A model generated the notes under the pieces. It was given only the letters and a program-made list of their open reading frames with translations. It ran no database searches and had not been told where the DNA came from. The position numbers were made by a program, and so were the translations under genes. From NCBI GenBank assembly GCA_020184695.1, contig JAANOX010000258.1, positions 310,001-374,000 of the forward strand: a DNA stretch of 64,000 nucleotides, written 5' to 3'. Positions 3,204 through 57,376 of the stretch are shown here, in pieces (the stretch's first letter is position 1; the number at the start of each line of letters is the position of its first letter). Source of the DNA: Histomonas meleagridis 2922-C6/04-290x (Eukaryota; Protista; Parabasalia).

Positions 3204-4201
3204 CTATGTACTAGCGATTACAGTAATTGTTTCTTCAGTATCAGCATAGTCTACTGGCCTTTTATTTAAGGAATCTTTCAAATTTTTATTTGCGCCTTTG
3301 CTCAACAAATATTTTACTAAAGGAAAATTCGAATTTTTGGCAGCATAATGAAGGCATGTGCTTACACAACAATCTTGTTGATTTACGTCGAAATTAAGTT
3401 CGTCTAACATTTAAGAATTAAATTAGTGTTGAAAAATCGGCTTGCATTCGAGAGAGTAAAATCTAATGTACCATTACTATACATTTGGGGTGCCCTACGA
3501 TAGAAAATTTCACAACTTTATTGTTGTGGCACTGAATCGCAACGCCAATATTAGAGCTGAGGTCGTGCCTATTAGAAAGCAATTGAACCGCTTCAAGGTT
3601 ACCACCCTCAACCGCCACAACCTTAGCTTCACTTCCAAGAAAGCAATGATTTTGCTCAAAGTAATTTAAAATTTTCATCGAACCACAAAATGCTGCAAAG
3701 ACAGGCATATTAAAAATGTAGTTGTACAACGTTATTGAGGAGCTGATGTTAGGTCTCGAACTGGAAAAATCAAGAAACCCATCAAGATCATCATTTCGAA
3801 TGAAATGCCAAATTGAGTTTTCTTGAATAGGGTCTTTTTCATATTCTTCAACCGACTTGATTTTGTTTGGATCAAAGTTGTTGTCTCCAATAAGGCCGCG
3901 TGCATAAAAGTAATAAGAAGCTTCAGTTGGATAAAAATCAATGAGAGAATCCTGTGAGTTCAAATAAATCACCATATAGCTTGAGGTTAAGATAAATAAA
4001 TTGAGAAGTTATTGTACACCGGATTAATTTTTGAACCCATAACTTATCAAGCTTGTGAATAAGTGATTTTGCTTCTTCAAAATTTGAAGACGAAAGGTGG
4101 TGAACCAATTCTTCAAAATGAGCATATTCCAAAACTTTTGTTTCGAGGTCTTCAGCAGTTTCCTGAACCAATCCATCAGTTTCAGCAATTTGCTCTTGCA
4201 T
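3204..4201 (-). pseudogene. DUF3447-like/ankyrin protein split by about 3 single-base frameshifts (pseudogene or consensus error)
   Basis: ORFs 3938..4201, 3463..3975 and 3204..3410 join through shifts in TC, T and A runs. Motifs: IRNDDLDGF, AAFCGSMKILNYF, GGNLEAVQ, TCLHYAAKNSNFPLVKYLLSKGA. Confidence 0.7.
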
Positions 4202-4873
4202 AAATTTGTAAAGTATTCATATGCTATTGACTGGTTTATATTACGATATAATCGTTTTTTATTGAAAAATAAATTTGATTTGAATTTAAATGAATGATTT
4301 CTTTTGTGGTTTCATATGATAACTAATCCGAAATCGGGGAATTTGTTAAAAGCTTATCGCGTAATTGAAGAAATTGTGTTACAAAATTATTTCCAATAAT
4401 TTAATTTGTATCATGCTAGAACATTGAAAACAAAATTCCATCTGACAAGCTTGTATCATTTTTTGAAACCTTATCACTTTCTTTTTGTTGAATTTGTTAA
4501 TTTAAAATTATTGATTATTTGGGGAAAAAAATTTTTTAATCTTTGGAAGTTGAAGTGGTAACACATTTTTTTGTAACCTTAAAGATAATACCTGATTACA
4601 TTTGATTTTAATTAATTTAGTCTTTTTGGTGTTTGACTTCATTTTCTTTATATTATTACATATTAAAACATGGTTTGCATTATTTGGTGAGCTCAATCTA
4701 CAACCTAATTATGTATATTATTGAATGATTGCAACATAAGTGATATTCTTATTTATGCTACGATTGCATGTAAGTAAATAGCAGTCACGGATTTAAGTCA
4801 TTATCGGAACGATGTTTTCATGACTCCTGTGGGTGAGAGATGCAAACGTAATCTTTTGCAAGTAATTAATTAA

Positions 4874-4920
4874 AAAGTGACATTATTAAAAAGTACTTTT
4901 TAACGGTTATGGCTGGCCTT
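4874..4920 (+). promoter_or_regulatory. Trichomonad-type core promoter of RPLP2 (M2 AAAGTGAC, M3 AACGGTT, M5-like GGCCTT)
   Basis: AAAGTGAC at 4874-4881, AACGGTT at 4902-4908 and GGCCTT at 4915-4920 lie just upstream of the ATG. They match core promoter motifs described for Trichomonas vaginalis. Confidence 0.6.
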
Positions 4921-4927
4921 AATCAGC

Positions 4928-5239
4928 ATGAAATACATCGCTGCATATCTTCTTGCCCAAGCTGGTGGCGACGCCTCCCCATCCAAAGAAAAGATTACAG
5001 CAATCCTCGAAAGTGTTGGTATCCAAGTTGATGCTAAAGCAATTGATGCCCTTCTTGAAAAATTAAATGGTAAAAACATTGAAGAACTTATCAAGGAAGG
5101 TTCTTCTAAACTCGCCGTTGTTGGAGGTGGTGCTGCAGCTCCAGCCGCTGCTGCAACAACAGAAGTTAAGGAAGAAGAAAAGAAGGAGGAAGAAGAAGTT
5201 GTTGAATTGGCAGGTGGATTTGATGATCTCTTCGATTAA
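4928..5239 (+). CDS. RPLP2: 60S acidic ribosomal protein P2
   Basis: N-terminus MKYIAAYLLA, Ala-rich hinge, acidic tail ending GGFDDLFD. Confidence 0.95.
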   Translation: MKYIAAYLLAQAGGDASPSKEKITAILESVGIQVDAKAIDALLEKLNGKNIEELIKEGSSKLAVVGGGAAAPAAAATTEVKEEEKKEEEEVVELAGGFDDLFD

Positions 5240-5521
5240 AATTACATAAACGCACATTTCAACTTTGCATTTTTTTAAATTTTTTTTTGAACAATTTTTA
5301 TTTAAATCAATAAATTAACACCACTGAATCATATACCACGCCATAGTAACCAAACAACAATTTCATGTTACTAATTAAAACAAAATAGTTTTTCGTATTG
5401 AGATTTTATTTTAGAATTTTGGAATAAAAATTGTTGATAAAATTTCGCTGAATTGTGATCGTTTTATATTCAATTCACTTTTTAAAATAAAAGTCATTTC
5501 ACATAATTTTTATGATCCAAG

Positions 5522-6448
5522 TTAATCTGTCCAATCAGTGTATTTTGTATTTGCGAAAATAGAAACCCCATAGAAATAACTTGACTTGTTCACATCATTT
5601 TGGAACTCGTTGAAAACGAGCAAGATGTTTTCGTTGAGCGCATTTTCATTCGGATATTCTAGGACCCCCATTCCTACCACAGTTGGTACTTTGTCGTTTA
5701 GATATCCCTGCGCATTTTTGATTACGACTTCGGCAGTTTCGCCAGTTCCGCTATATATCATTGGTGCAACCATGTGAAGGCGTTTTGAGTTCACGAAGTC
5801 ATACCCATGAGTGTTAGGGAATCGGCCTGAATTTGCTCTATTGGGAAACCAATATGCAATGGCCGATGATAACAAACAATTTTCTGAATAATTCGAAACG
5901 AGTTTTCGAACCTCTTCAAGTACGACAAGGAACTTATCAATTATAGAGATTTGCGTATTATCGTCTCCATTTTTCCATTCGTCGAGTGCATGTGGTTCAG
6001 CATCAAGATGAATTCCTTCAACAGTCAGATTGTTATCGCGTAAGAAATCAAGAATTTCTGTAATTTTTTTTTTGGATGCATCAACATCAGTGACATATTG
6101 TGTACCTTCAAGTGTCATCCAATGAACACTTATTCCTTTATCATGAAAAGCTTTGATATTTGCTGCTGCAATGCTTGTGCGCATTGAGATAAAAACAAAG
6201 TTCCAACCTTTTGATTTTGCATAATTGGCATTATGTTCTGCATCATTATAAGATGAGTGATAAAACCATCCACCTCTACAATTGTGATTTCCAACACCAC
6301 ACAATGAAGGCGTTACACCTTCAGGATCTTTTGTTGATAAAGTTACAGACAGAGTAACTACGAGAACAACCACAATAACTGCAGAAACGCAAAGGATAAT
6401 AAAGTTTCTCATTGAAAGGCATCCAATTTTTTTATCAGCAAATCCCAT
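5522..6448 (-). CDS. Type II membrane protein with a putative glycoside-hydrolase-like TIM-barrel domain
   Basis: N-terminal TM anchor (FIILCVSAVIVVVLVVTLSV). EGIHLDAEPH resembles a GH18-like DxE strand. APMIY and GVSIF resemble later barrel strands. Confidence 0.55.
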   Translation of the reverse strand: MGFADKKIGCLSMRNFIILCVSAVIVVVLVVTLSVTLSTKDPEGVTPSLCGVGNHNCRGGWFYHSSYNDAEHNANYAKSKGWNFVFISMRTSIAAANIKAFHDKGISVHWMTLEGTQYVTDVDASKKKITEILDFLRDNNLTVEGIHLDAEPHALDEWKNGDDNTQISIIDKFLVVLEEVRKLVSNYSENCLLSSAIAYWFPNRANSGRFPNTHGYDFVNSKRLHMVAPMIYSGTGETAEVVIKNAQGYLNDKVPTVVGMGVLEYPNENALNENILLVFNEFQNDVNKSSYFYGVSIFANTKYTDWTD

Positions 6449-7189
6449 GAACTAAAGTGGTTGTGAAAAATATTTTGTTAGCTGTGGAGAAACAGAACAA
6501 TTTCGACTTTTTGAGTCAGTGATTGGTCAAAAAGTAGCGTTCATTCAATTTTGACAAGAACTTGCTTGACGGTTATTATTGTGTAATTAACAACTTTGGT
6601 ATAAAAAAGTGGCTTCATAAATTTGATGAAAGCCCGCCAAAAATTGTTTGATAATTTTTCAATACAGTCGTTAAAACCGTTTTTTCTGGTAGCTATTTAG
6701 GCATTTTTCCATCTTTATACATAAAAGTTCAATAAAATTTGGTCTTGTTATGCCAACCCCATGCTTTTTTTGTTTTGATAACCAATTATATGTTTTCGAT
6801 ATAAAATTATATAATTTACCAATTATATTTTTCAAAGGAATTGTAAATAAAAAACACTTTTTCATCGTTGTAGAAAATCAAGATAAATAGCAGATATCAA
6901 GTTTAATAATTTCGAAGATTTAAGAATCATTCAAATGAGTTTATTCTTATATTAATATTTTTCCGAAAAAAACATATCTTTTTCTCATTTTCCAAATTAT
7001 ATCTATCATTCATTGTTCAAAAGGATAAATTTATTTTTTAGGATGACGAATATTAAAGTTTTATCGAACATCCTCTTTTTGGAGACCGTTTACAGAAGCC
7101 AAGAATAAAGTTTCAATGTTAACGTACAATTTTTTCTGAATCTTCATTTAAAAACAGAAAACCTGCTTTTTCACAAGTGCATTCAATTA

Positions 7190-7639
7190 TTGAAATGGCC
7201 ACCCATCACAATCCCAATGTGCAAGGAAGTCGACGAACAGCCAAAGAAGGAAACAAAGAAGGAGAAGCCAGCCCCACCACCTCAGCCAGCCGAAACACCT
7301 AAACCAGCTGAACAACCTCAGCCAGCTGAACCACCTGAACCCGCTCAACCACCCACAGAACCAACTAAAGAAGAACCTTCAACTTCTTCCTCCTCTTCTT
7401 CTTCATCTTCTCATCATTCATCTCCTCCAGCTCCAGCTCCAACACCTGCTCCAGCTCCGGAACCAGCCCCAGCCCCAGCTCCAGAACCAACACCAGCACC
7501 ACCTCCAGAACCAACACCAGCCCCATCAAACCCTACCCCTGATACCTCAACAGGAAGCGATAGTGATTATTACACATCCTCTTATGGATCATACACCGAT
7601 GACTACACTGATTCATACGGTGATAGCTCATATAGCTAA
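7190..7639 (+). CDS. Pro/Ala/Ser-rich low-complexity protein (possibly starts at ATG 7043 across an in-frame TAA at 7106)
   Basis: PAPEP/PAPAP repeats, a poly-Ser run and a Tyr/Asp/Ser-rich tail. GC is higher than the flanks. Confidence 0.55.
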   Translation: MKWPPITIPMCKEVDEQPKKETKKEKPAPPPQPAETPKPAEQPQPAEPPEPAQPPTEPTKEEPSTSSSSSSSSSHHSSPPAPAPTPAPAPEPAPAPAPEPTPAPPPEPTPAPSNPTPDTSTGSDSDYYTSSYGSYTDDYTDSYGDSSYS

Positions 7640-8143
7640 AAAGTTTAAGCGAACCAAAATAAGAACACAATAAACGCAACGTCATCTCTTAATCTTTTTT
7701 ACCGCCTCAAAAACCATTGGATGATCAAATGGACCAAACGACGATAGGCAGAATTGAGAACAAACAACAAAATAAATTAAAAGTTTACAGGGAAAAATCG
7801 TAACAAATAACCGAAAATTGAATGAAATTAAACGTATCGGTTTTTTATAGGGACTTTGGTAAAGTTCTCAATCAAATGTTTGCCAAGAAAATATTGTGCT
7901 CAAAAAGTAAACGTGGCCTTATCGTACCAACTTTTTAAATGCGATTCTGACGAGACCGATCAAAACTGTCTTCCTTGTGTCTCTTGAGAACAAATTTGTT
8001 TCATCGTTGAAACAGTAATTTATTCATCCGATTGAATATAAAAAACAACACTTCGAAGAAATTCAATTTATTTTTAAAAAGGATATTCTAAATTTTATTA
8101 AAAAAATGAGTGTATAATTCTGATTCAACAAAAACAATTTTAA

Positions 8144-9615: not shown

Positions 9616-12008
9616 ATGCTTGATAAAATCTACCAGGGGCCGACAGTTACAAATATAGATTTTACAAAAGAAAATAAAAAAACTAAAAGCCAAAGCATTC
9701 TGCTAGAATCTCTTCTTTCACTTGAACATATAATATTTAATTTAAGTAAAGAAAATATTGAATTATCAGTACAACAAACATCGAAGTTAATTGATTCAAA
9801 ATTTTTATATTCATTTAATTTTGTTATAAGTAAATTAATTTATTTTGCTTTTGTGTCTCAAAATAAAGGAAGCACTATTTATATCAATTATTTAAAATCA
9901 CTTCAGGAGAAAGAAGAAGAAATTACCAAAAACAATTATAAGATATTTGAGTTTTTTATTAATTACATCTCCAAAATTGAATCACAAGAAACATATTTTC
10001 TAATTGCTGAAATGATTGAACAAAATTTAGTTCACGAAGATATAATAAAAAATAAGAAATCAAAATATTTCGCACATTATAAAACAGAAAAGGAAAACAA
10101 TGAACTAAATGGTGAACCCTTTGAAGATACTTTTATTGACAATTATAAAAAACTTTCAGAGAATGATTTTGAACTTCATAAAAAGTTGATTGAAGAAGGA
10201 CATAATCCTGATAAAATTGCGAAAATAATTCGAAATGATGAAATCGAAAAACTTCAAGAAATATCATCACAAAATAATTTTGATTTTAATCAATTTATTG
10301 AACCATCACTTTATGAAAGATTTTCATTTATTAATGTAAAAAATGTTTCTTTAATTGATTATGCAGCATTTTTTTCTTCAATTAAATGTTTTAAATATTT
10401 ACTTATGAATGGTGCAATATTAAATAACGCAGGTAAATATGCAATTGCAAGTGGAAACATTGAAATTATTCATTTATGTGAACAGAATCATTCATCATTT
10501 GAAGATGCATATGAAACAGCAATTGAATTTCATCGAAACGATATCTTTAAATATCTTTATGAGAATAAAATTGCTGAAATTAATAATTTAGAAGAATTTG
10601 GAGAAAAATGTATTTTGTATTGTAATTATGAAATTTTGTTATTTTTGATTGAAGAAGGAATGGAAATCAATGATGATATTATTAAAGAAGCTGCAGAAAT
10701 TGGAAATATATTTCTTATTAAATATTTTTTGCAAGAAAATCACGTTCCAAAAAATATTTTAGTTTTTTCAGCTAAATCAGAAAATTTTGAGTGCTTTAAA
10801 TACATTTTAAGAAAAGATATATCTGATATCAATGCTAAAGATATTTATTTGTTTTGTTTAATATTTGTTTTAATAACTTTTTATTTCAAAATAATATATG
10901 GAAATTATTTTGAACATTTAATACAGCACTTATGAAGGCATCTTCAAAAGGTCATATAGATATAGTTAAATTACTTCTTGAACAAGAAGGAATTGATATT
11001 AATGCTAAAAATATTTATTCATTTTATTTAAAATTTATTTTAATAATTTTATAATTCAAAATAATATTTGGAAATTATCTCAAACATTTAATACAGCATT
11101 TATTTTAGCATCTTCGAATGATCAAAAAGATATTGCTAAATTACTTCTTGAACAAGAATGTATTGATATTAATACTCAAAATAATTATTTATTTTATTCA
11201 AAATTTATTTAAATAATTCTTAATTTCAAAATAATATTTGGAAACTATTTAAAATATTTAAAACAGCATTTATAAAAGCATCTTCAAAAGGTCATACAGA
11301 AATAGTTAAATTACTTCTTGAACAAGAAGTAATTGATATTAATGCTAAAGATATTTATTTGTTCTATTGAAAATTTATTTTCACAATTTAATATTTCAAA
11401 ATAATATTTGGAAATTATCTCAAACATTTAATACAGCACTTATTTTAGCATCTTCGAATGATCAAAAAGATATTGCTAAATTACTTCTTGAACAAGAATG
11501 TATTGATATTAATACTCAAAATAATTATTTATTTTATTCAAAATTTATTTAAATAATTCTTAATTTCAAAATAATATTTGGAAACTATTTAAAATATTTA
11601 AAACAGCATTTATAAAAGCATCTTCAAAAGGTCATACAGAAATAGTTAAATTACTTCTTGAACAAGAAGGAATTGATATTAATGCTAAAGATATTTATTT
11701 GTTCTATTGAAAATTTATTTTCACAATTTAATATTTCAAAATAATATTTGGAAATTATATTAAATATTTAACACGGCACTTATTTTAGCATCTTCAAAAG
11801 GTCATATAGATATAGTTAAATTACTTCTTGAACAAGAAGGAATTGATATTAATGATAGTAACTTTACTTAATTTTGTAAAAAATTTATACTAATGATTTC
11901 GTATTTCAAAAATATATTAGGAAATTATTTAAATTATTTCAAACAGCGCTTATATCTGCTAAACAGAATTGTTATATAGAAATAGTAGAATTGATTAAAG
12001 GTTATTGA
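9616..12008 (+). CDS. DUF3447-ankyrin repeat gene, locus A. Continuous ORF to about 10842, then 7 ankyrin blocks separated by 80-nt spacers
   Basis: Motifs [16 protein letters not shown] and [18 protein letters not shown]. Downstream 90-nt TAL...GIDINAK(D/N) blocks are stop-free. The terminal block TALISAKQNCYIEIVELIKGY ends in TGA at 12006-12008. Confidence 0.75.
10843..11942 (+). repeat. 170-nt-period array (90-nt ankyrin block + 80-nt spacer) x7
   Basis: Spacers at 10843-10922, 11013-11092, 11183-11262, 11353-11432, 11523-11602, 11693-11772 and 11863-11942 are all 80 nt. Confidence 0.9.
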
Positions 12009-12104
12009 GCTTAATAATGAATTTCATTTCTATTGTTATTTGGTCATTAACCTATATTTCGCCCGTTTATTTTTATAAACGGTTTTGGCGGTGAATTCAC
12101 TGGA

Positions 12105-12494
12105 ATGACAGCATCATTGGGCTCTTTATTTGACGAATATCTCCAAAAGGCATCAGATATTGTTTTTGATTATTCGTCAGTTTTGAGCACTGTTACAGGA
12201 AATCAAATTTATATTATTCCAATTGAAAATAAAAAATTAGAAAAAAAAGTTACAACAGATAAAAGCCCTAAAAAGAAGGAATCCTTAAAGAAAGAAAAGA
12301 AACCGGTTTCTTTAACGCAAAAGGAAATTGATGATATAATAATAAAATCTGTTTCACGTACAAGTCTTGATATCCACTCTAACACATTTCTAAATAATCT
12401 TAAAAAAAAGTTTCCAGGAATTTCGAAAAAAGATGTGGAAAATAGGATAGATGAATTGAATAATGAAGGAAAACTCAAGAAAAAAGATGAATAA
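12105..12494 (+). CDS. Hypothetical Lys-rich protein
   Basis: 129-aa ATG-initiated ORF with an M3-like AACGGTT about 27 nt upstream. Confidence 0.55.
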   Translation: MTASLGSLFDEYLQKASDIVFDYSSVLSTVTGNQIYIIPIENKKLEKKVTTDKSPKKKESLKKEKKPVSLTQKEIDDIIIKSVSRTSLDIHSNTFLNNLKKKFPGISKKDVENRIDELNNEGKLKKKDE

Positions 12495-12576
12495 ACAACT
12501 ATATTTTAAGATACCAAAGCATAAAAATTAAATTCTTTAATTTATTATAAGCTAAAATTCTAATTTTAAATTGATT

Positions 12577-12924
12577 TTAAAATTCTGTCGAATCAAACAC
12601 CGAACCACAGTTCATGTTTGGATTCAGTAAGAGAAGAAATTCTCTTTTTGTTTCTAAAATCAATTTCTTTCTTTCTTGGAGCCAATCTTTGAAATCATTT
12701 TGAAACCTTTCTCTTTCCTTTAGTACTTCTGCTGTTGATTTAGTGATTAGGATTATTTCATTTAATAATTTCAATTCTTTTCGTGATAATTGATCTGTTG
12801 ATTTTCCAAGTGTTTGGGTTATTAAATCTTTTTCGTGTTCAATTGATTGTTGATTGTTTTTTGGTAATGCTGTGCTAACTGGTTGATTATGATTTGTATC
12901 TCCTCTCTTTCCTTTGTTGAACAT
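12577..12924 (-). CDS. Hypothetical helical protein
   Basis: 115-aa ATG ORF with plausible composition, convergent with the previous gene. Confidence 0.5.
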   Translation of the reverse strand: MFNKGKRGDTNHNQPVSTALPKNNQQSIEHEKDLITQTLGKSTDQLSRKELKLLNEIILITKSTAEVLKERERFQNDFKDWLQERKKLILETKREFLLLLNPNMNCGSVFDSTEF

Positions 12925-26269: not shown

Positions 26270-27003
26270 ATCATTCTTGATCAAGTAATTCTATAATTTT
26301 AGTGTAACCATTAACATTTACAATATAATAGAAATAAAACCAAAATGAAAAAATTTTTAGCACCAATATCAATTCCTTCTTTTAGAAAAGTTATTTAACT
26401 ATTTTTGTATAGAATGAGTGCTGTATTAAATGTTGCATTATTATTTGAGAATTCTCAAATAGTAATTTGATATCAAAATATTTTTGTAAATATTATCTTT
26501 AGCATTAACATCAATTTCTTTTTGTTCTAAAACATATTTAACAAGATGTATATTTTCCGATTTTATTGAATAAATCAAAATATTTTTCTTGGAAAAAATA
26601 TTTAATAAGAAATATATTTCCAATTTCTGCAGCTTCGTTAATAATATCATCATTGATTTCCATTTTTTCTTCAATCAAAAATAACAAAATTTCATAATTA
26701 CAATACAGAATACATTTTCCTCCAAATTCTTCTAAATTATTAATATTTTTTATTTGTTATCATAAATATATATAAAGATATCATTTCGATGAAATTCAAT
26801 TGCTGTTTCATATGCACCTTCAAATGATGAATGATTCTGTTCACATAAATGAATAATTTCAATGTTTCTAATTCGAGAGCTCAATAAAATCATTTTCAAT
26901 CATTTTCTCGGAAAAATAATAAGATTCATGAGTGTTTCTTAAGATCTATTAAATCAACAAAAACATCCAATGTTGTTGGTTGGGCATTCTTTTCAATTTT
27001 CAT
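26270..27003 (-). pseudogene. Internally deleted DUF3447-ankyrin paralog of locus A
   Basis: Near-identical to locus A over [16 protein letters not shown]...EEFGGKCILYCNYEILLFLIEE...EAAEIG, but the domain core is missing and frames are broken. It carries a decayed 70-nt spacer (26425-26494) before TAL. Confidence 0.7.
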
Positions 27004-30799: not shown

Positions 30800-31300
30800 A
30801 TTTGTGTGGAAAGCACGCATTTTTGAGAGAATAAAATTATATCAAAAAATGAAACTTTTTGATAGAAACATTTGATTGTGTTTAATAAAAATATTAAAAT
30901 ATTTAAATTTATGCAATATTTCGGCAAATATTTAAACATTTGCATTTTATTTTCAAATTTTTTAATCATTCATTTTAAAATAAATTTCAAATAAAAGAAA
31001 TACATATTTTTAGAATTAATATCAATTCCTTCTTGTGCATGAAGTAATTTGACAATTTCAGTATGTCCTCTTGATGATGAAAACAGAAGTGCTGTATTAA
31101 AAATTATATACTTCTTCAATTGATAAAATATTTTTTCACATAATTATGTAATTTCTAGATTTCCACCTGCAATTGTATACTTTATTGTGCTATTGATTGT
31201 CTAACTATTCATAAGTAAAAATCGAAAACATTTAATTGCTCCAAAAAACTTCATTGCAGATTTAGAAGATGTTTCAATATTATCCTCTTTTAACTCAAAT
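30800..31300 (-). pseudogene. Highly decayed DUF3447-ankyrin remnant
   Basis: Recognisable fragments GGNLEII and [30 protein letters not shown], followed by an AT-rich spacer-like tract. Confidence 0.5.
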
Positions 31301-37770: not shown

Positions 37771-40700
37771 TTATATTATTTCTTTAATCAATTCAACGAT
37801 TTCATTATGACCATTTTTATATGCATACATTATTGCTGTTTTATATAATTTAATTAATTTCCAAATATTATTTTGTACCATGTTATCAAAACAAATTTCA
37901 TATGAAGCAAATTAATTTCTTTAATATTAGTATCAATTCCTTCTTGGTTAATAAATAATTTTACAATATCTTTATGACCTCTATCGCAAGCATAAGTTAA
38001 TGCTGTCATAAATAATAAGGATAAAAATTAAACAACAGTTTGAAATATAAAGAAATTAAAACATACATTAAATTTGATAAATTAATATCTTTAGTATTAA
38101 TATCAATTCCTTTTTGTTCAAGAAGTAATTTAACTATATCAAAATTACCTTTTGTGGATGCTGCTATAAGTGCTGTACTAAATACATAGTATATTTTCCA
38201 AATATTTTTATGCAATATTAAATATTTATTATAAATAATATTTTGCACATTAATTTCAATTCCTTCTTGTTCAAGAAGTAATTTAACTATTTCTGTTTGA
38301 CCGTTTGCTGCGGCGCGAATAAGTGCTGTTCGAAATAAATTGAATAATTTCCAAATACTATTTTGAAATCCAAAATTTTTGCTATTAATATTGTCTTTTG
38401 CATTGATATCAATCCCTTCTTGTTCAAGAAGCAATTTTACTATTTCGTTATTACTTTTTGCTGAAGCGGTTATAAGTACTGATAAAAATAATATTAATAT
38501 TTTCCAGATTTTTTTTTGAATCATGAAGAAATTGGAAAAAAAAATATCTTTAGCATTAATATCAATTCCTTTTTGTTCAAGAAGTAATTTAACTATTTCT
38601 GTTTTACTATTATTGACAGCATAAAAAAGTGGTGTCTTAAGTAAATTGTATCAATTCCATTTATCGTTTTAAAATATAAAATAATTAAAATTTTTAGGTG
38701 TAAATCAAATAAATATTTTTAGGATTAATATCAATACCCTTTTGTTCAAGAAGTAATTTAACTATTTCTACATTGCCATTGAAAGTTGCACACTCAAGTG
38801 CTGTACCAAATAATTTAAATAATTTCCAAATGTTATATTGAAATATTAAACAATTAAAGTTATTATTTGCTTTAGCATTAATATCAATATCATTTCGTTC
38901 AAGAAGTAATTTAACCATCTTTAAAAAACCACCACAACATGCACGCATAAGCGGATTTAGAAATATTTTAAATAATTTCCAAAATTTATTTTGAATCTTT
39001 AAGTGATTGGGAAAAAAATTATCTTTAGCATTGATATCAATTCCTTTTTGTTCAAGTAGTAATTTAACATTTTCTATCTGATTACTTGCAGATGCTAAAA
39101 TAAGTGCAGTATTAAATAATTAAAATAATTTCCAAATATTATTTTGAAATATAAAATTATTAATATTAATTTTGAATAAAATAAATTAATATCTTCAGCA
39201 TTAATATCAATTCCTTCTTGTTCAAGAAGTAATTTGCAAATCTCTATGTAATCACTCACAGATGCTAAAATAAGTGCTGTACTAAACAATTTGAAAAATT
39301 TCCAAATACTTTTTTAAAAAATTGAATTATTATAATATTCATTTGTTTTAGCATTAATATCAATACCTTTTTGCTTAAGAAGTAATTTAACTATTTCTGT
39401 ATTACCGTTTTCAGATGCTTTCATAAGTGCTGTTTTAAATAATTTAAATAATTTCCAAATGTTATTGTGAAATACCAAATTATTAAAATAAATGTTAAAT
39501 GAAACAAATAAATATCTTTAGCATTGACATCAATGCCTTCTTGTTTAAGAAGTAATTTTACTATTTCATAACAACTTTTATTAGATGCATAAATAAGTGC
39601 TGTACAAAATATTCTTAATAATTTCCAAACACTAATTTATAACATCATATTAAACATATAAATTTTATCATTAGCATTGATATCAATTCCTTTATGCTCT
39701 AGAAGAGATTTAACAATTTTTACACGAGCATTTTTAGTAGCTATAATAAGTGCTGTTTCATATTATTTAAATAATTTCCAAATATTTTTTAAAAATATTA
39801 AATAAACGAAAAAAAAAATTATATAAAATCTAAAAATATTTTTAGCATTAATATCAATTCTTTCATGTTTAAGAAGTAATTTGGTTAAAGGGCATAACAC
39901 ATTTCCAACTGCGATTAAAAGTGCTGTATCACATTATTTAAATAATTTCCAAATTTTATTTTGAAATATTAAAAAATCTAAAAAAATTTTAATTAAAATA
40001 TATGAATATCTTTAACATTTACATCAATTTTTTCATGTTTAAGAAGTAATTTAAATATTCTGATTGAACTCTTTAGGGATAGTGTAAGAACTGTATTAAA
40101 TATTTTCTATATATTCCAAATATCATTTTTAAATCTTAAAATATTAAAATTAATAATAAATGAAACAAATAAAAGTCCATAGCATTAACATCAATTCCTT
40201 GTAGTTTAAGAAGTTTTTCAAAAATATCAAAATTGCCATATTGACATGCCAACAAAAGACCTGTTCTAAATAATATAAATAGATTCCAAAAATTAATTTG
40301 AAACATAAAACTATATAAACGAATTTTAAACAAAAGAAATAAATATCTTTAGCATTTATATTAATTGATTTTTGTCTCAGAAGTTTTTGAAAAATATAAT
40401 CATGACCTTTGGTGCATGCAAGCAAAAACGCTTTATCGAATAATTTAAATAATTTCCAATTATTATTTTAAAACACCAAAATTTTCAAATAAATATTATT
40501 GATGTCTATTCCCTCATAATCAAGTATTAAATTAACAAGATCACAATTTCCGGAATTAGAAGCAAATGACAAAATATTTGTTGGAATTGGGTAAATATCA
40601 AGAAAGTGTTTCACAAGGAATAAATTTCCTGATGATGCAAATAGATTAATAATATTTTCATCTATATTCATTCCTTTTTCAATCAAAAACTGAATAATCA

Positions 40701-41634
40701 CAAAGTTATTATATTTTAAACAAATTTCTACCAAACCTTTATACATATTTTTATTATTTTGTAACCGTTCAAATTGGTTTTCATAAAAATATTTAAAGAT
40801 ATCATTACGATGAAATTTAATTGCTGTTTCAAATGCGTACGAAAATATTGAATGATATTGTAAACATAAATGAATTATCTCTAAGTTTCCATCTGCAATT
40901 GCATATCTACCTGTGTTATTTACTATTGCGCCATTCATAAGTAAATATTTAAAACATTTAATCGATCCAAAGTATGCAGCATAATCAATTAATAAAGTGT
41001 TAGATTGATTAATATAAGAACACCTTTCATAGAGAGAAGGTTTAATAATTTGATTAAATCTAAATTTAGGATGAGATGATATTTCTTGAAGCTTTTCTAT
41101 ATCATCATTTCGAATTATTTTTGCAATTTCATTTGGATTAACTCCTTCTTTAATCAATTTCTTATGAAGTTCAAAATTATTCTTTTTAAGTTCTTCATAA
41201 TTTTCTTTATAAAATTCTGGAAGCATTGGGTCTGAATTGTAGTGTGAAAAATATTTTGTACTTAAATTATTGGCAGATAAAGAATCAATTAAATCGGATT
41301 CAATTATTTTACCTATAAGATAATATGATTCTTGTGAGTTAATTCCAAAGTTTATTCGAATAAACTTTTTTATAATATTAACATCATTAATCTCATTTAA
41401 ATTTTCTTGAATTAATTGTAAATATTTAAGATATATTTCGTGTTCCTGCATAAGAGATGAAAATGCAAAATTAATAAGTGAGCAAATAATATCACAGCTT
41501 GAATAAATGTAAAATTTATCAAGTAAACAGATTGTTTGTTGAACTGAATCATCAAGGTTTTTTATGGATAAATTAAATATAATTTGTTCGAGTTGTATAA
41601 GTTTTTGTAATTCGGTGATCCTATTGGATTCCAT
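37771..41634 (-). CDS. DUF3447-ankyrin repeat gene, locus D. Continuous ORF to about 40495, then 17 ankyrin blocks separated by spacers
   Basis: Motifs [16 protein letters not shown] and LIDYAAYFGSIKCFKYL. The blocks are stop-free, and the terminal block TAIMYAYKNGHNEIVELIKEII ends in TAA at 37771. Confidence 0.72.
37840..40494 (-). repeat. Ankyrin block/spacer array, 17 spacers in two main length classes (80 and 63 nt)
   Basis: Spacer lengths in gene order: 60,80,80,80,81,63,80,63,80,63,63,79,63,63,63,80,77. Coding blocks are 90 nt (one is 87). Confidence 0.85.
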
Positions 41635-53150: not shown

Positions 53151-56100
53151 TTATTTGGTTCTTTTATATATTGATCCTTTCTCTTGAAGTAATTTGAATA
53201 TTTCTGTATGACCATTTTCATATGCCCACATAATTGCTGTTTTAAATAATTAATGATATTTCCATACAATATTTAGAAATACAATATTTTAAAAACTAAT
53301 TCTAAACACACCAAATTAATATTTTTAGCATTTATAACAATATCTTTTCGTTGGAGAAGTAATTTTACAATTTCGATATGGCCATTTTCAGAAGCCAACA
53401 TAAGTGCTGTTTTATATGATTCAAATAGTCACCAAATATTCTTATGAAATACTGTTTCATGCTAACAAATTTTAAATAAAATATTTAAACATCTTTTGCA
53501 TTAATGTCAATGCCTTCTTGTTTAATTAGAAATTCAACTGCTTTAGTATAACCATTTTGAGATGCTACCATAAGTACTGTTTTAAATAATATGAATAATT
53601 TCCAAATATTATTTTGAATCATAATATTATTTATATAATAATTTTGCATAACAAATAAATTCCTTTAGCATTTATATCATTATTTTTATGTACAAGTAGA
53701 ATTTTCATGATTTCAATATTACAATATTGGGCTGCCCACATAAGTGCTGTTTTAAATATTTTAAATAATTTCCAAATACTATTATGAATTGTTATATTGT
53801 CAATTGAAATACTAAATAAAATAAATTAACATCTGTAGCATTGATTTCTATATCATTATGTTCAAGAAATAATTTGACGATTTCTATGAGACCATTTTCT
53901 ATAGCTAAAATAAGTGCAGTTTTAATTGTTTTGAATAAATTCCAAATATTATTTTGAATTTAAATATTATTAAAATTCGCTTTATTCAAATGTAATAAAT
54001 ATCTCTTGTATTGATATCAATTTCTTCATGCCCAAGAAGTAACTTAATTATTTCGATGTAGCTAGAAACCAATGATAATTTTTGTGGATCTTTTGCAATT
54101 TCTGTGTGATTATATTTCGATGCTAAAATAATAATTGTAGTTTGATGAAATTTAAATGAATTCCAATCATAGTTATAAAATATTAAATTATTAAAACGAA
54201 AATTAAACAAAGTATATAAATATTTTTACTATTAACATCAATTTCTTTATGATTTAGAAGTAATTTTACTACTTCTATTTGACCATTTTCAGATGCTTTC
54301 ATAAGTGCTGTCCAAAATAATTTAAATAATTTCCAAGTACTATTTTGAAATATCAAATTGTGAAAACAAATTTTCAATAAAATAAATAAATATTTTTAGC
54401 ATTAATAACAATTTCTTCTTGTTCAAGAAGTAATTTAACAATTTCTGTATGACCATTATCAGATGCTTTAATAAGTGGCGTATCAAATATGTTAAACAAA
54501 TTCCAAATATTATTTTAAAATATTAAATTATTTTTATGATACCAAAATAAAATTAAAAAATATCTTTAGCATTAATATCAAATCCTTCTTGTTCAAGAAG
54601 TATTTTTACTACTTCTACATGACCTTTTTGAGATGCTGACAAAAGTGCTGTTTCAAGATATTAGAATAAATATAGTTATAAATATTAAATTATTAAAGTA
54701 AATATAATAAGAAATTAATAAAATCCATTTGGATAAATATCAAATTCAATTTGCTCGAGAAGTAATTTGACAATTTCTTTATTTCCTTTACTGGCTGCTA
54801 AAGTAAGTGCTGTTTTATGTAATTTGATTAATTCCCACATTTATTTTAGATACATAAATTTTTTATAAAACCATCCAAATAAAAGAAAAAATCATTATAA
54901 TCAATATCAATTCCTTCTTGTTCAAGAAGTAATCCAACAATTTCGATTTGATTATTATCAGATGCTCTCATTAGTGCTGTTCTAAATGATTTAAATAATT
55001 TCGAAATATTATTTCGAAATATAAAATTTGTAAAATTAACATTAAATACAACAAATAAATATCTTTAACATTAACATCAATTCCTTTTTGTTTAAGAAGT
55101 AATTTAACTATTTCTGTACGACCATTTTCAGATGCTATTTTAAGTGCTGTATCAAATAATTTAAATAATTTCCAAATATCATTTTGAAATCAAAAATTAT
55201 TAAAATAAATATCAAATAAAACAAATAAATACCCTTAAAATTAACATCAATTCCTTCATGAGCAAGAAGTAACTTAGCAATTTTTGTATTGCCATTTTTA
55301 GATGCATACATTAATGCTGTATAAAATAGTTTGAATAAATCCAAAATATTATTTCAAAATTGGATAAAATTTTAAAAATTAACATCAAATAAAACAAATA
55401 AACATATTTTTTAGCATTAACATCAATTCCTTTTTGTTCAAGAAGTAATTTAACTACTTCTATACGAACCTTTTTAGATGCTATTATAAGTGCTGTATAA
55501 AATAATTTCAATAATTTCCAAATACTATTTTGAAATAGAAAATTAATAAAATAAATTTTAAATAATGAAAATAAATACTTTTAATGTTAACATCAATTCC
55601 TTTTTGTTCAAGAAGTAATTTAACTACTTCTATACGACCATTTTTAGACGCTTTCATAAGTGCTGTCCAAAATAATTTAAATAATTCCCGAATATTGTTT
55701 TGAAATATTAAAATATTAAAATAATCATAAAGTAAAACATACAAATATTTTTAGCATTAACATCAATTCCTTTTTGTTCAAGAAGTAATTTAACTATTTC
55801 TGTATGACCATTTTTAGATGCGGCCATAAGTGCTGAATTAAATGATTTAAATAATTTCCAAATATTGTTTTGAAATATTAAAATATTAAAATAATCATAA
55901 AGTAAAACATACAAATATTTTTTGCATTAACATCAATTCCTTTTTGTTCAAGAAGTAATTTAACTACTTCAGTTTTACCAAACATAGATGCTTGCATAAG
56001 TGCCATCGTAAATATTTTAAATTGTTTCCAAATAATATTTTAAAATATAAAATAATATAAATAAAATTTAAATATAACAAATAAGTATTTTTAATGTTGA

Positions 56101-57376
56101 TATCAATTCCTTTTTGTACAAGAAGTAATTTAACTATTTCTGTATTACCATTTTTAGATGCACATATAAGTGCTGTATTAAATGATTTAAATAATTTCCA
56201 AATATTATTTTGAAATACCAAATTATTAAAACAAATTTTATCTTTAGCATTGATGTCAATTCCTTGTTGAAAAAGAATATATTGAATAAGTTCTAAATTT
56301 TGTGATTCTACGGTTTTAAATATTATATCTTTTGGAAATTTCTTTTTATGGAGAAAATGTTCAACAAGATATAAGTTCCCGGTTCTTGCAGATTCACTTA
56401 AGTCATCATCACTTTCCAAACCTTCTTTTTCCAAAAATGATAGAATTTCATAATTTCCACTGTTAATACAAAAACATATCAGTTTATCTTGTTCAATATT
56501 CTCAAAGTTATTATCATAAAGATAAAGAAAAATTTTATTTTTATGGAATTGAATTGCTGTTTTATATGCATCTTCAAATGATGAATGATTTTGTTCACAT
56601 AAATAAATAATTTCTTCGTTTCCGCCAGCAACTGCATATTTACCTGCATTATCTATTTTTGAACCATTCACAAGTAAATATTTAAAGCATTTAACTGATG
56701 AAAAAAATGCTGCATAATCAATTAATGTAACATTTTCTTTATTAATAAAATTACATCTTTCATAAAGTGATGATTCAATTTTTTGATTAAAATCAAAATT
56801 TGATTGTGATGATATTTCTTGAAGTTTTTCTACTTCATCATTTCGAATTATTTTTGCAATTTTACTTGGATTAACTCCTTCTTTGATTAATTGCTTATGA
56901 ATTTTAAAATCATCATTTGAAAGTTCTTCATATTTTTTAAAAAAGCTTGTAGTTATATTTGAATCAACAAATTTTCGTTCAATCATCCGATAAATTAAAT
57001 AATATGCTTCTTGCGTTTTGATTTTAGATAAAAAATTATAAAAAATTTCAAAAATTTTTTGATTGCTTTTTATTTCTTCTTCTTTTGTTTGAATTATTTC
57101 TAAATAATTTAAATAAATATCATTTACATTCTTCTGTGAACAAAATGCGGAATAAACCAAGTTACAAATTACAATATTAAATGTGTATGGGAAATTTAAA
57201 TCATATAATTTTATTATTTTTAGAATGGAAGAATTCAAATTATCTTCATTTAATTTGAAAACGACCTTTTGCATTTTAATAAGAACTTCCATGCTGATGT
57301 ATTTATAACCAAGGCTTTTATTATGTATTATCTGGGATAATGGTGTAGCTTTGGAAGTGCTTTTGCTTTCCATCAA
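53151..57376 (-). CDS. DUF3447-ankyrin repeat gene, locus E. Continuous ORF to about 56087, then ankyrin blocks separated by spacers
   Basis: Motifs [16 protein letters not shown] and [17 protein letters not shown]. The blocks are stop-free, and the terminal block [29 protein letters not shown] ends in TAA at 53151. Confidence 0.72.
53241..56239 (-). repeat. Ankyrin block/spacer array, 18 spacers (13 exactly 80 nt)
   Basis: Spacer lengths in gene order: 63,80,80,80,80,86,80,80,77,72,80,80,83,80,80,80,80,80. Confidence 0.85.

Follow-up and report, generated by a model that had tools for sequence, protein, structure and literature searches.

Serial 17-nucleotide elements between single codons in a DUF3447/ankyrin gene family of Histomonas meleagridis: probable micro-introns removed from RNA

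Results

A DUF3447/ankyrin gene with regularly interrupted repeats

The stretch of DNA analysed here, hereafter the window, comprises 64 kb of contig JAANOX010000258.1 (assembly GCA_020184695.1) of the parabasalid Histomonas meleagridis. On its forward strand, at positions 9616-12008, lies a gene for a DUF3447/ankyrin protein whose ankyrin blocks are separated by short spacers. In this work, we propose that these spacers consist of serial 17-nucleotide (nt) elements alternating with single codons, and that the elements are probably excised at the RNA level. The guanine-cytosine (GC) content of the window is 27.7%, and that of the H. meleagridis genome is 28.7% (PMC8529796). The closest named proteins are 'caskin-like' DUF3447 proteins of H. 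meleagridis, with further relatives in gut-metagenome contigs; chicken-gut metagenomes contain 5-6% of the words of the array described below.

The first exon (9616-10842) has 409 codons, from the ATG to ...DISDINAKD, and encodes the DUF3447 domain (Pfam, E 2.7e-8) and the first ankyrin helices (Ank_2, E 4.3e-9). Reading it straight into the first spacer (10843-10935, forward strand) yields a hydrophobic tail (IYLFCLIFVLITFYFKII...) followed by TGA. Protein models of the relatives P0004, P0006, P0018 and P0020 also finish with hydrophobic tails, which are probably annotation artefacts.

The array that follows (10843-12008) is made up of seven 170-nt units, each an 80-nt spacer and a 90-nt ankyrin block. 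All seven spacers are exactly 80 nt long and start at 10843 + 170k. Tandem Repeats Finder (TRF) reports a period of 170 (6.6 copies, 81% match), as well as a period of 340 (90% match). The blocks are free of stop codons and translate as TAL/TAF...NAK(D/N). They occupy positions 10923-11012 (block 1, a Pfam Ank match), 11093-11182 (block 2, TAFILASSNDQKDIAKLLLEQECIDINTQN), 11263-11352, 11433-11522, 11603-11692 and 11773-11862, and the last one (11943-12008) is a capping half-repeat, TALISAKQNCYIEIVELIKGY, ending in ...ELIKGY and a TGA stop codon at 12006-12008. The preliminary description of this DNA, made from the sequence alone, had thus rightly reported the seven spacers of 80 nt, their 170-nt period and the stop-free blocks closed by a capping helix. 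It had also noted that the spacer at 11013-11092 contains neither GT nor AG, which holds for spacers 2, 3 and 5; spacers 1, 4 and 6 contain GT and no AG, and spacer 7 contains both.

The same description held that the spacers diverge while their length is kept. Within the array this was overstated, since spacer 5 duplicates spacer 3 letter for letter and spacer 6 differs little from spacer 4, but it is correct across paralogous genes and related organisms (see below). As the 340-nt period and its 90% match show, the array expanded recently by 340-nt duplication, and the constancy of spacer length inside it is therefore of little weight.

Spacers read as 17-nt elements and single codons

Read from its 3' end, an 80-nt spacer resolves into four copies of a 17-nt element followed by one codon. 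In linker 1 (10843-10922), elements e1 to e4 lie at 10843-10859, 10863-10879, 10883-10899 and 10903-10919, and the codons AAT (10860-62), TTT (10880-82), GGA (10900-02) and AAT (10920-22) spell N-F-G-N. Linker 2 (11013-11092) has four elements and AAA, TAT, GGA, AAT (K-Y-G-N), linker 3 (11183-11262) four elements and AAA, TTA, GGA, AAA (K-L-G-K), and linker 4 (11353-11432) four elements and AAA, AAT, GGA, AAT (K-N-G-N). Linker 5 (11523-11602) has the sequence of linker 3 and hence K-L-G-K, and linker 6 (11693-11772) combines four elements with AAA, AAT, GGA, AAC (K-N-G-N). In linker 7 (11863-11942), the elements lie at 11863-79, 11883-99, 11903-19 and 11923-39, and the codons AAA (11880-82), CGT (11900-02), GGA (11920-22) and CAA (11940-42) give K-R-G-Q. 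The isolated codons of the gene thus read NFGN, KYGN, KLGK, KNGN, KLGK, KNGN and KRGQ.

The codons fit what the blocks lack. Block 1 aligns with positions 4-32 of the 33 positions of the Pfam Ank profile (PF00023, E 1.4e-8), so that the missing part amounts to exactly four hairpin positions, 33 and 1-3. The single codons supply x-x-G-x with the Gly at the Gly position of the profile, as expected of genuine ankyrin repeats. Four elements per linker account for 4 x 17 = 68 nt, leaving 12 nt, which bears out the earlier proposal that removal of about 68 nt would give ordinary 34-residue repeats. However, the spacer is not the single 80- or 68-nt element envisaged then; it comprises four 17-nt elements alternating with codons. 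Deletion of all 28 elements (476 nt) produces a single open reading frame (ORF) of 1917 nt, encoding 638 amino acids (aa) with DUF3447 and seven canonical 34-aa DxxGxTAL repeats. The predicted mature linkers include AATTTTGGAAAT and AAATATGGAAAT, and the predicted junction peptides include ...INAKDNFGNTALMK and ...DINAKDNFGNTALMK.

The pattern extends to the 30 spacers of the window, which read from the 3' end as element and codon repeats, those of 72 and 79 nt being irregular. The third single codon encodes Gly in 26 of the 30, and the resulting linkers (KDGW, NYGK, NWGR, DLGD and others) resemble typical ankyrin hairpin tips. The 19 distinct 80-nt spacers contain 76 single codons, all of them sense codons. 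An uninterrupted D..G.TAL hairpin is absent from all frames of the 64-kb window, versus at least 27 block starts. When ORFs were stitched by dynamic programming with free 17-nt skips, the non-ankyrin genes of the window needed no skip, and the elements in the window are confined to ankyrin hairpins. The same stitching did not discriminate for the element parse, T-rich frames being often open, and neither did a register-shift stop-codon control on its own.

RNA contigs break at element edges

Transcripts were examined as Logan contigs; the DNA and RNA samples come from different cultures of the same labelled organism. RNA contigs cover exon 1 at 9625-10179 and 10604-10843 with 0 mismatches. Two of them (X3 rec12 and X4 rec19) match from 10604/8 to 10843 with 0 mismatches and continue with 17 letters foreign to the genome, whereas the DNA contig X1 rec3 runs on into linker 1, to 10852. 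At linker 4, two other RNA contigs (X3 rec13 and X5 rec30) open with 3-4 unmatched letters and join the genome at 11430, where the fourth codon begins. X5 rec30 then matches 11430-11524 with 0 mismatches before 38 unmatched letters. The predicted end of this contig is likewise 11524, because the codon AAA and the element AAT... have their first two bases in common. A further RNA contig, X4 rec22, is 886 nt long and agrees with the genome without mismatch over 11940-12781, downstream of 44 unmatched letters; as its match begins with the CAA codon of linker 7, it places a junction at the edge between e4 and codon 4. The DNA contig X1 rec7 covers 11828-11947 unbroken. Altogether, the points where RNA contigs part from the genome, 10842/3, 11429/30 and 11939/40, are predicted element edges, and DNA contigs cross them. 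The element model predicts the ends 10843, 11430, 11524 and 11940 to the base, given that the element and the first codon (AAT or AAA) start with one or two bases in common.

Word counts agree with these breaks. The sampled share of the 31-mers of the array is 0.31-0.35 in RNA runs and 0.79-0.88 in DNA runs, and blocks alone would give 396/1136 = 0.349. DNA contigs X1 rec3 and rec7 have depths of ~460-540, compared with a single-copy baseline of 495. Among block-to-block joints in the RNA runs, the best supported have a linker of ~11-12 nt of the xxGx type (EDGK, KKGR, KNRK, KYGN and others); such joints with a canonical linker are at depth 0 in the DNA run, whose counts are incomplete. A loose-end consensus of RNA from paralogues, A+AATATGGAAATACAGCACTT, gives a product of the KYGN-TAL type. 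A protein database search for RNA-derived products over the first junction returned no match, in a database that apparently does not contain the short Logan contigs.

Directly downstream of the gene, a 129-aa Lys-rich ORF (12105-12494, forward strand) has an RNA contig depth of 120-675, versus 5-70 for the ankyrin gene, and its RNA contig is continuous with the last ankyrin block. Further on, within a minus-strand ORF (12577-12924), the RNA contig X3 rec15 matches in two pieces, 12710-12813 and 12784-12903, that overlap by 30 nt; a difference in a short duplication, or the assembly, may be the cause.

Paralogues and related loci

Two more DUF3447/ankyrin genes of the window, at 53300-57376 and 37771-41634, both on the reverse strand, have the same architecture. 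In the latter, 80-nt linkers with four elements occur alongside 63-nt linkers with three, the first element being the missing one; a 63-nt spacer is the 80-nt pattern minus that element. This mixture implies that single elements can be present or absent between repeats. Over the window, 20 of the 30 spacers are 80 nt long and 6 are 63 nt long, and the others measure 86, 77, 72 and 79 nt, so the length is not always 80 nt as the preliminary description would have it. The window has 25 copies of the spacer core TTTCAAAATAATATTTGGAAATTAT, where 0.02 would be expected, extending to the two further genes and to decayed fragments.

Some spacers are irregular. The 72-nt linker at 54723-54652 (reverse strand) cannot be parsed into 17-mers and codons without a stop, that of 79 nt at 38714-38636 (reverse strand) has a first element of 16 nt only, and that of 86 nt at 55406-55321 (reverse strand) has two additional codons and lacks the Gly. 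They may represent decayed repeats or variant element sizes. Two loci of the window look like remains of the family, both on the reverse strand: at ~26330-26560 a 70-nt spacer is followed by a block containing stops, and at ~30850-31120 a lone ankyrin block precedes element remnants.

The same 17-nt units, with very different sequences, were found in related DNA, namely contigs L001 and L003 and another H. meleagridis locus, L005 (GCA_020184695.1, contig JAANOX010000047.1, locus coordinates 4001-8000). Linkers in these loci have two, three or four elements (46, 63 or 80 nt). Linker length obeys 12 + 17k, additional codons contributing 3 each, which indicates that gain and loss affect whole elements, as with introns. 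Position 1 of the related-locus elements is G in 44%, position 2 is T in 78% and the last position is T in 96%; ~37% start with GT and none ends with AG. Their 5' end is GU or AU, their centre is A-rich, and a conserved A stands at position -4. At L005, linkers have two 17-nt elements, mostly starting with GT (NR[17]G[17]W, FA[17]G[17]R). The annotated gene of 428 aa at this locus stops inside the first linker, and ~2.7 kb of ankyrin blocks without a gene model follow downstream.

Element sequence, constraint and structure

The 79 distinct elements of the window conform to a consensus (A/G)(T/A)TT-N9-ATTT, with A at position 1 in 62 of 79, A at position 14 in 68 of 79 and T at positions 15-17 in ~70 of 79. 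They do not have the borders of known spliceosomal introns. A GT start is seen in only 4 of the 79 and an AG end in none, and the GT..AG combination of U2-type introns is lacking altogether, in line with the earlier description of the spacers as non-GT-AG intervening sequences. An AT start, as in U12-type introns, is present in 43 of 79, but as ATTT, and an AC end in 1 of 79; both the U12-type /ATATCC 5' motif and the TCCTTAAC branch site are missing. The fused branch/3' motif of trichomonads, ACTAACACACAG (PMC12316389), is not found in the elements, which have only an A-rich centre and an A at position -4. They also contain many AUUUA pentamers, the classic AU-rich-element motif, and unprocessed transcripts might thus be unstable.

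In the 19 distinct 80-nt spacers, the columns assigned to codons and to elements behave differently. Entropy is 1.04 bit in codon columns versus 0.61 bit in element columns, and the GC content of the twelve codon columns is 0.27 versus 0.087 in the elements. Codon columns have a pairwise distance of 0.41 and elements one of 0.24, with the third codon positions of the blocks in between at 0.32. The elements are thus more constrained than the codons that they separate. The ratio of nonsynonymous to synonymous substitution rates (dN/dS), which the preliminary description had proposed to compare with spacer divergence, is ~0.8 among the blocks.

We found no conserved RNA structure: RNAalifold predicted 0 pairs across the 19 aligned spacers, and single-sequence folding gave z = +0.36. 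A structured intron was discarded for this reason. The paired CAG...CTG motif and the end-joining structure of euglenid nonconventional introns are likewise lacking from the elements, whose GC content is ~9%. No conserved pairing of the bulge-helix-bulge or IRE1 type was detected at the cut sites, although A/U-only helices are weak and easily missed.

Discussion

Taken together, the RNA contig breaks, the word shares and the codon parse make it probable that the elements are serial, non-canonical micro-introns of 17 nt excised at the RNA level. Judged indirectly, from contig breaks and k-mer share, they have the defining properties of introns: presence in DNA, absence from mature RNA and precise joining. 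The gene at 9616-12008 would accordingly encode a 638-aa DUF3447/ankyrin protein from a coding sequence interrupted 28 times. The intervening elements, 17 nt long and A/U-rich, (A/G)(U/A)UU-N9-AUUU, would be present four per inter-repeat linker, each between adjacent codons (phase 0). The hairpin codons x-x-G-x would then be left as isolated 3-nt exons, such that 80 = 4 x (17+3), and excision of the elements from the transcript would give a mature mRNA with ordinary 12-nt linkers. Of the two options left open by the preliminary description, intron-like or recoding, the RNA data favour the former and suggest that removal takes place in RNA.

The removal would be a splicing-type reaction, and we lean towards a highly divergent spliceosome with ruler-like choice of the 3' site as the machinery involved, a candidate that we consider somewhat probable. 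The R-U 5' end, GU being common in relatives, the U-rich body, the A-rich centre and the strict minimal length all speak for a spliceosomal origin. Against it stand the missing AG and branch motif, an A that lies as close as 4 nt to the 3' end, and exons of 3 nt that offer no room for exon contacts. That a different, non-spliceosomal machinery of the cut-and-ligate type is at work seems rather unlikely. There is a somewhat larger, if still minor, chance that the remover is anything other than the canonical spliceosome, be it an endonuclease-ligase that works as a ruler, an excision system that depends on guides, or an altered spliceosome that needs neither GU nor AG.

A number of observations weigh against micro-introns. 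The RNA evidence consists of contigs, not reads, and the runs are presumed to be RNA on the basis of the tool's guess. The evidence at the junctions is that of match ends and, for the unmatched contig parts of 17 and 44 nt, of length. Paralogue noise is very large, and the joint counts of the DNA run are incomplete. In two RNA contigs, X3 rec14 and X5 rec31, e4 of linker 7 is retained and joined to the last block; these may correspond to partly processed RNA, contaminating DNA or chance. The match of X3 rec14 starts at 11920, the edge between e3 and codon 3, which suggests that removal perhaps proceeds from 5' to 3', with e3 removed before e4. The window linkers of 72 and 79 nt and the L005 linkers of 67 and 61 nt could not be parsed, some family copies are clearly decayed, and the dN/dS among blocks is only ~0.8. 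The element motif alone has a median information of ~10 bits, too little for specificity, so the tandem context or some other cue must contribute. Finally, we know of no splicing machinery that removes non-GU-AG introns separated by 3-nt exons.

Several of these points could also be explained if the arrays were decayed pseudogenes in which old 17-nt insertions in dead repeats had been amplified in tandem, with RNAs with canonical linkers stemming from intact paralogues elsewhere. The recent expansion of the array (340-nt period, 90% match), the dN/dS value, the decayed fragments and non-parsing spacers of the window, the public gene models that stop within the first spacer and the incomplete joint counts of the DNA run are all compatible with this idea. 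We nevertheless regard it as improbable. Gene-specific RNA contigs, with matches of 236-842 nt and 0 mismatches, break at element edges where DNA contigs do not, and the array k-mers in RNA amount to the share of the blocks only. Moreover, 0 of 76 single codons are stops and the Gly is kept, the exact 17-nt length persists in diverged paralogues and in other organisms, and the window has no uninterrupted hairpin. The elements could alternatively be cut from a transcribed DNA copy, in the manner of the internal eliminated sequences of ciliates. They are indeed short, A/T-rich, of fixed size and precisely excised, and RNA lacks them. However, DNA runs keep the spacers at single-copy depth (~460-540 versus 495) with a word share of 0.79-0.88, and DNA shows the canonical-linker joints at depth 0. 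A division into germline and somatic nuclei is not known from parabasalids. Excision at the DNA level, one of the mechanisms first suggested, is thus contradicted by the data, and we consider programmed DNA elimination very improbable.

It is still harder to reconcile the data with a translational solution, as the preliminary description had also suggested, in which ribosomes would skip over elements retained in the mRNA or change frame, like T4 gene 60 and the mitochondrial 'byps' of yeast. Short inserts of fixed length inside an ORF would suit such a process, as would the retention of e4 of linker 7 in some RNA contigs. Yet recoding is contradicted by RNA contigs that part from the genome at element edges and by the lack of spacer k-mers in RNA runs, and 28 consecutive bypasses per protein would presumably be very inefficient. 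We assign an equally slight probability to a single intron per linker, be it (a) the whole 80 nt, leaving 30-aa repeats, (b) the first 17 nt only, the 3' 63 nt then coding for a 21-aa loop (..FQNNIWKLF..), or (c) introns of 51 and 17 nt around a 12-nt micro-exon, ATATTTGGAAAT (IFGN). Several 63-nt spacers are open and in frame, the core TTTCAAAATAATATTTGGAAATTAT is conserved in its 25 copies, and the difference between 80 and 63 is 17, as one would expect from such arrangements. Nevertheless, form (a) is at odds with RNA matches that begin at the fourth codon (11430 and 11940) and not at the block start. Form (b) meets stops in its frame in 13 of 28 spacers, and two stops in L001, and the letters of X5 rec30 immediately upstream of 11430 are unmatched. 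Form (c) predicts ends at 10844 and 11523 instead of the observed 10843 and 11524, and it leaves unexplained the variable, GC-richer columns 18-20 and 38-40.

Other readings were tried and abandoned. A 3' splice site at ACAG fails as its AG belongs to the Thr-Ala codons and is missing from TPL blocks, and an 82-nt AT-AC intron breaks the frame. A 21-aa coding insert, combined with one 17-nt intron or a -1 frameshift, was rejected because of the stops (13 of 28 spacers, and L001) and the RNA edges; the exact match ends and the column statistics likewise eliminated the 12-nt IFGN micro-exon between 51- and 17-nt introns. Decoding of TAA as Gln, considered in view of a recurrent 'Q' position, is contradicted by many ORFs of 300-1292 aa that are free of TAA and TAG.

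If the elements are micro-introns, they can be compared with several known systems. Heterotrich ciliates have introns of ~15 nt. The spliceosomal introns of mikrocytids are 16-17 nt long (PMC10245619), and the type B introns of Trichomonas vaginalis, with poly-T, measure 23-25 nt (PMC12316389). The elements described here resemble such ultra-short introns in a size at the lower physical limit, in very narrow lengths, in their removal from RNA, and in being U-rich with an A-rich centre, with many GU starts in relatives. In contrast to those GT-AG introns with a recognisable branch motif, 0 of 79 elements have GT..AG ends, and they finish in U and mostly begin with A. Also unlike them, the elements are arranged in tandem, four per 80 nt with 3-nt exons in between, and in the window they are found in ankyrin hairpins only. 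U12-type introns, which are far longer than 17 nt, share the A-U start with the elements, which nevertheless lack both /ATATCC and TCCTTAAC and have a 3' AC in 1 of 79 cases. The absence of GT-AG borders, an unknown or unusual mechanism of removal and abundance in one lineage are reminiscent of the nonconventional introns of euglenids, which have a paired CAG/CTG motif, an end-joining secondary structure and variable length (PMC12501133, PMC6221363). The elements differ from these in being almost devoid of G and C, in having no conserved pairing and in their fixed length of 17 nt. As for exons consisting of a single codon, 3-nt micro-exons exist in animals and plants (e.g. PMC8042270), but they are rare and have long canonical introns on either side, whereas here they are serial and flanked by 17-nt elements.

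Two systems that act on other molecules also bear similarities to the elements. The bypass elements of T4 gene 60 and the 'byps' of Magnusiomyces remain in the mRNA. They too are short non-coding inserts in ORFs that do not end the protein, but in our case the RNA lacks the inserts. Ciliates remove TA-bounded internal eliminated sequences from the DNA of their somatic nucleus. The short ones share with the elements a small size, a high A/T content, precise excision and numerous interruptions of coding sequence, but the elements are kept in the DNA of the sequenced cells.

We found no published description of such elements in the searchable literature, and there is a substantial chance that the micro-introns constitute a new class. 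If confirmed, they would rank with the shortest intervening sequences on record and be the first to surround single-codon exons in series; they also lack GU-AG. Each of these features, short size, serial single-codon exons and lack of GU-AG, would challenge present views of the steric and sequence limits of splicing. Should the remover prove to be non-canonical, the elements would represent a new class of nuclear intervening sequence, with very many events per transcriptome and exons of single codons. Confirmation of the micro-introns would also offer a testable system for finding the machinery, a minigene with a 17-nt element.

Trichomonads are thought to be very intron-poor, with ~60-100 introns in T. 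vaginalis and 573-638 predicted in H. meleagridis (PMC12316389, PMC8529796). Confirmation of micro-introns would imply that, in this parasite, annotation wrongly presents the ankyrin genes of this family as coding for truncated proteins, which is demonstrated here for one public model, that of L005. If a non-canonical machinery does remove the elements, the ankyrin genes of this family would be hidden from standard annotation.

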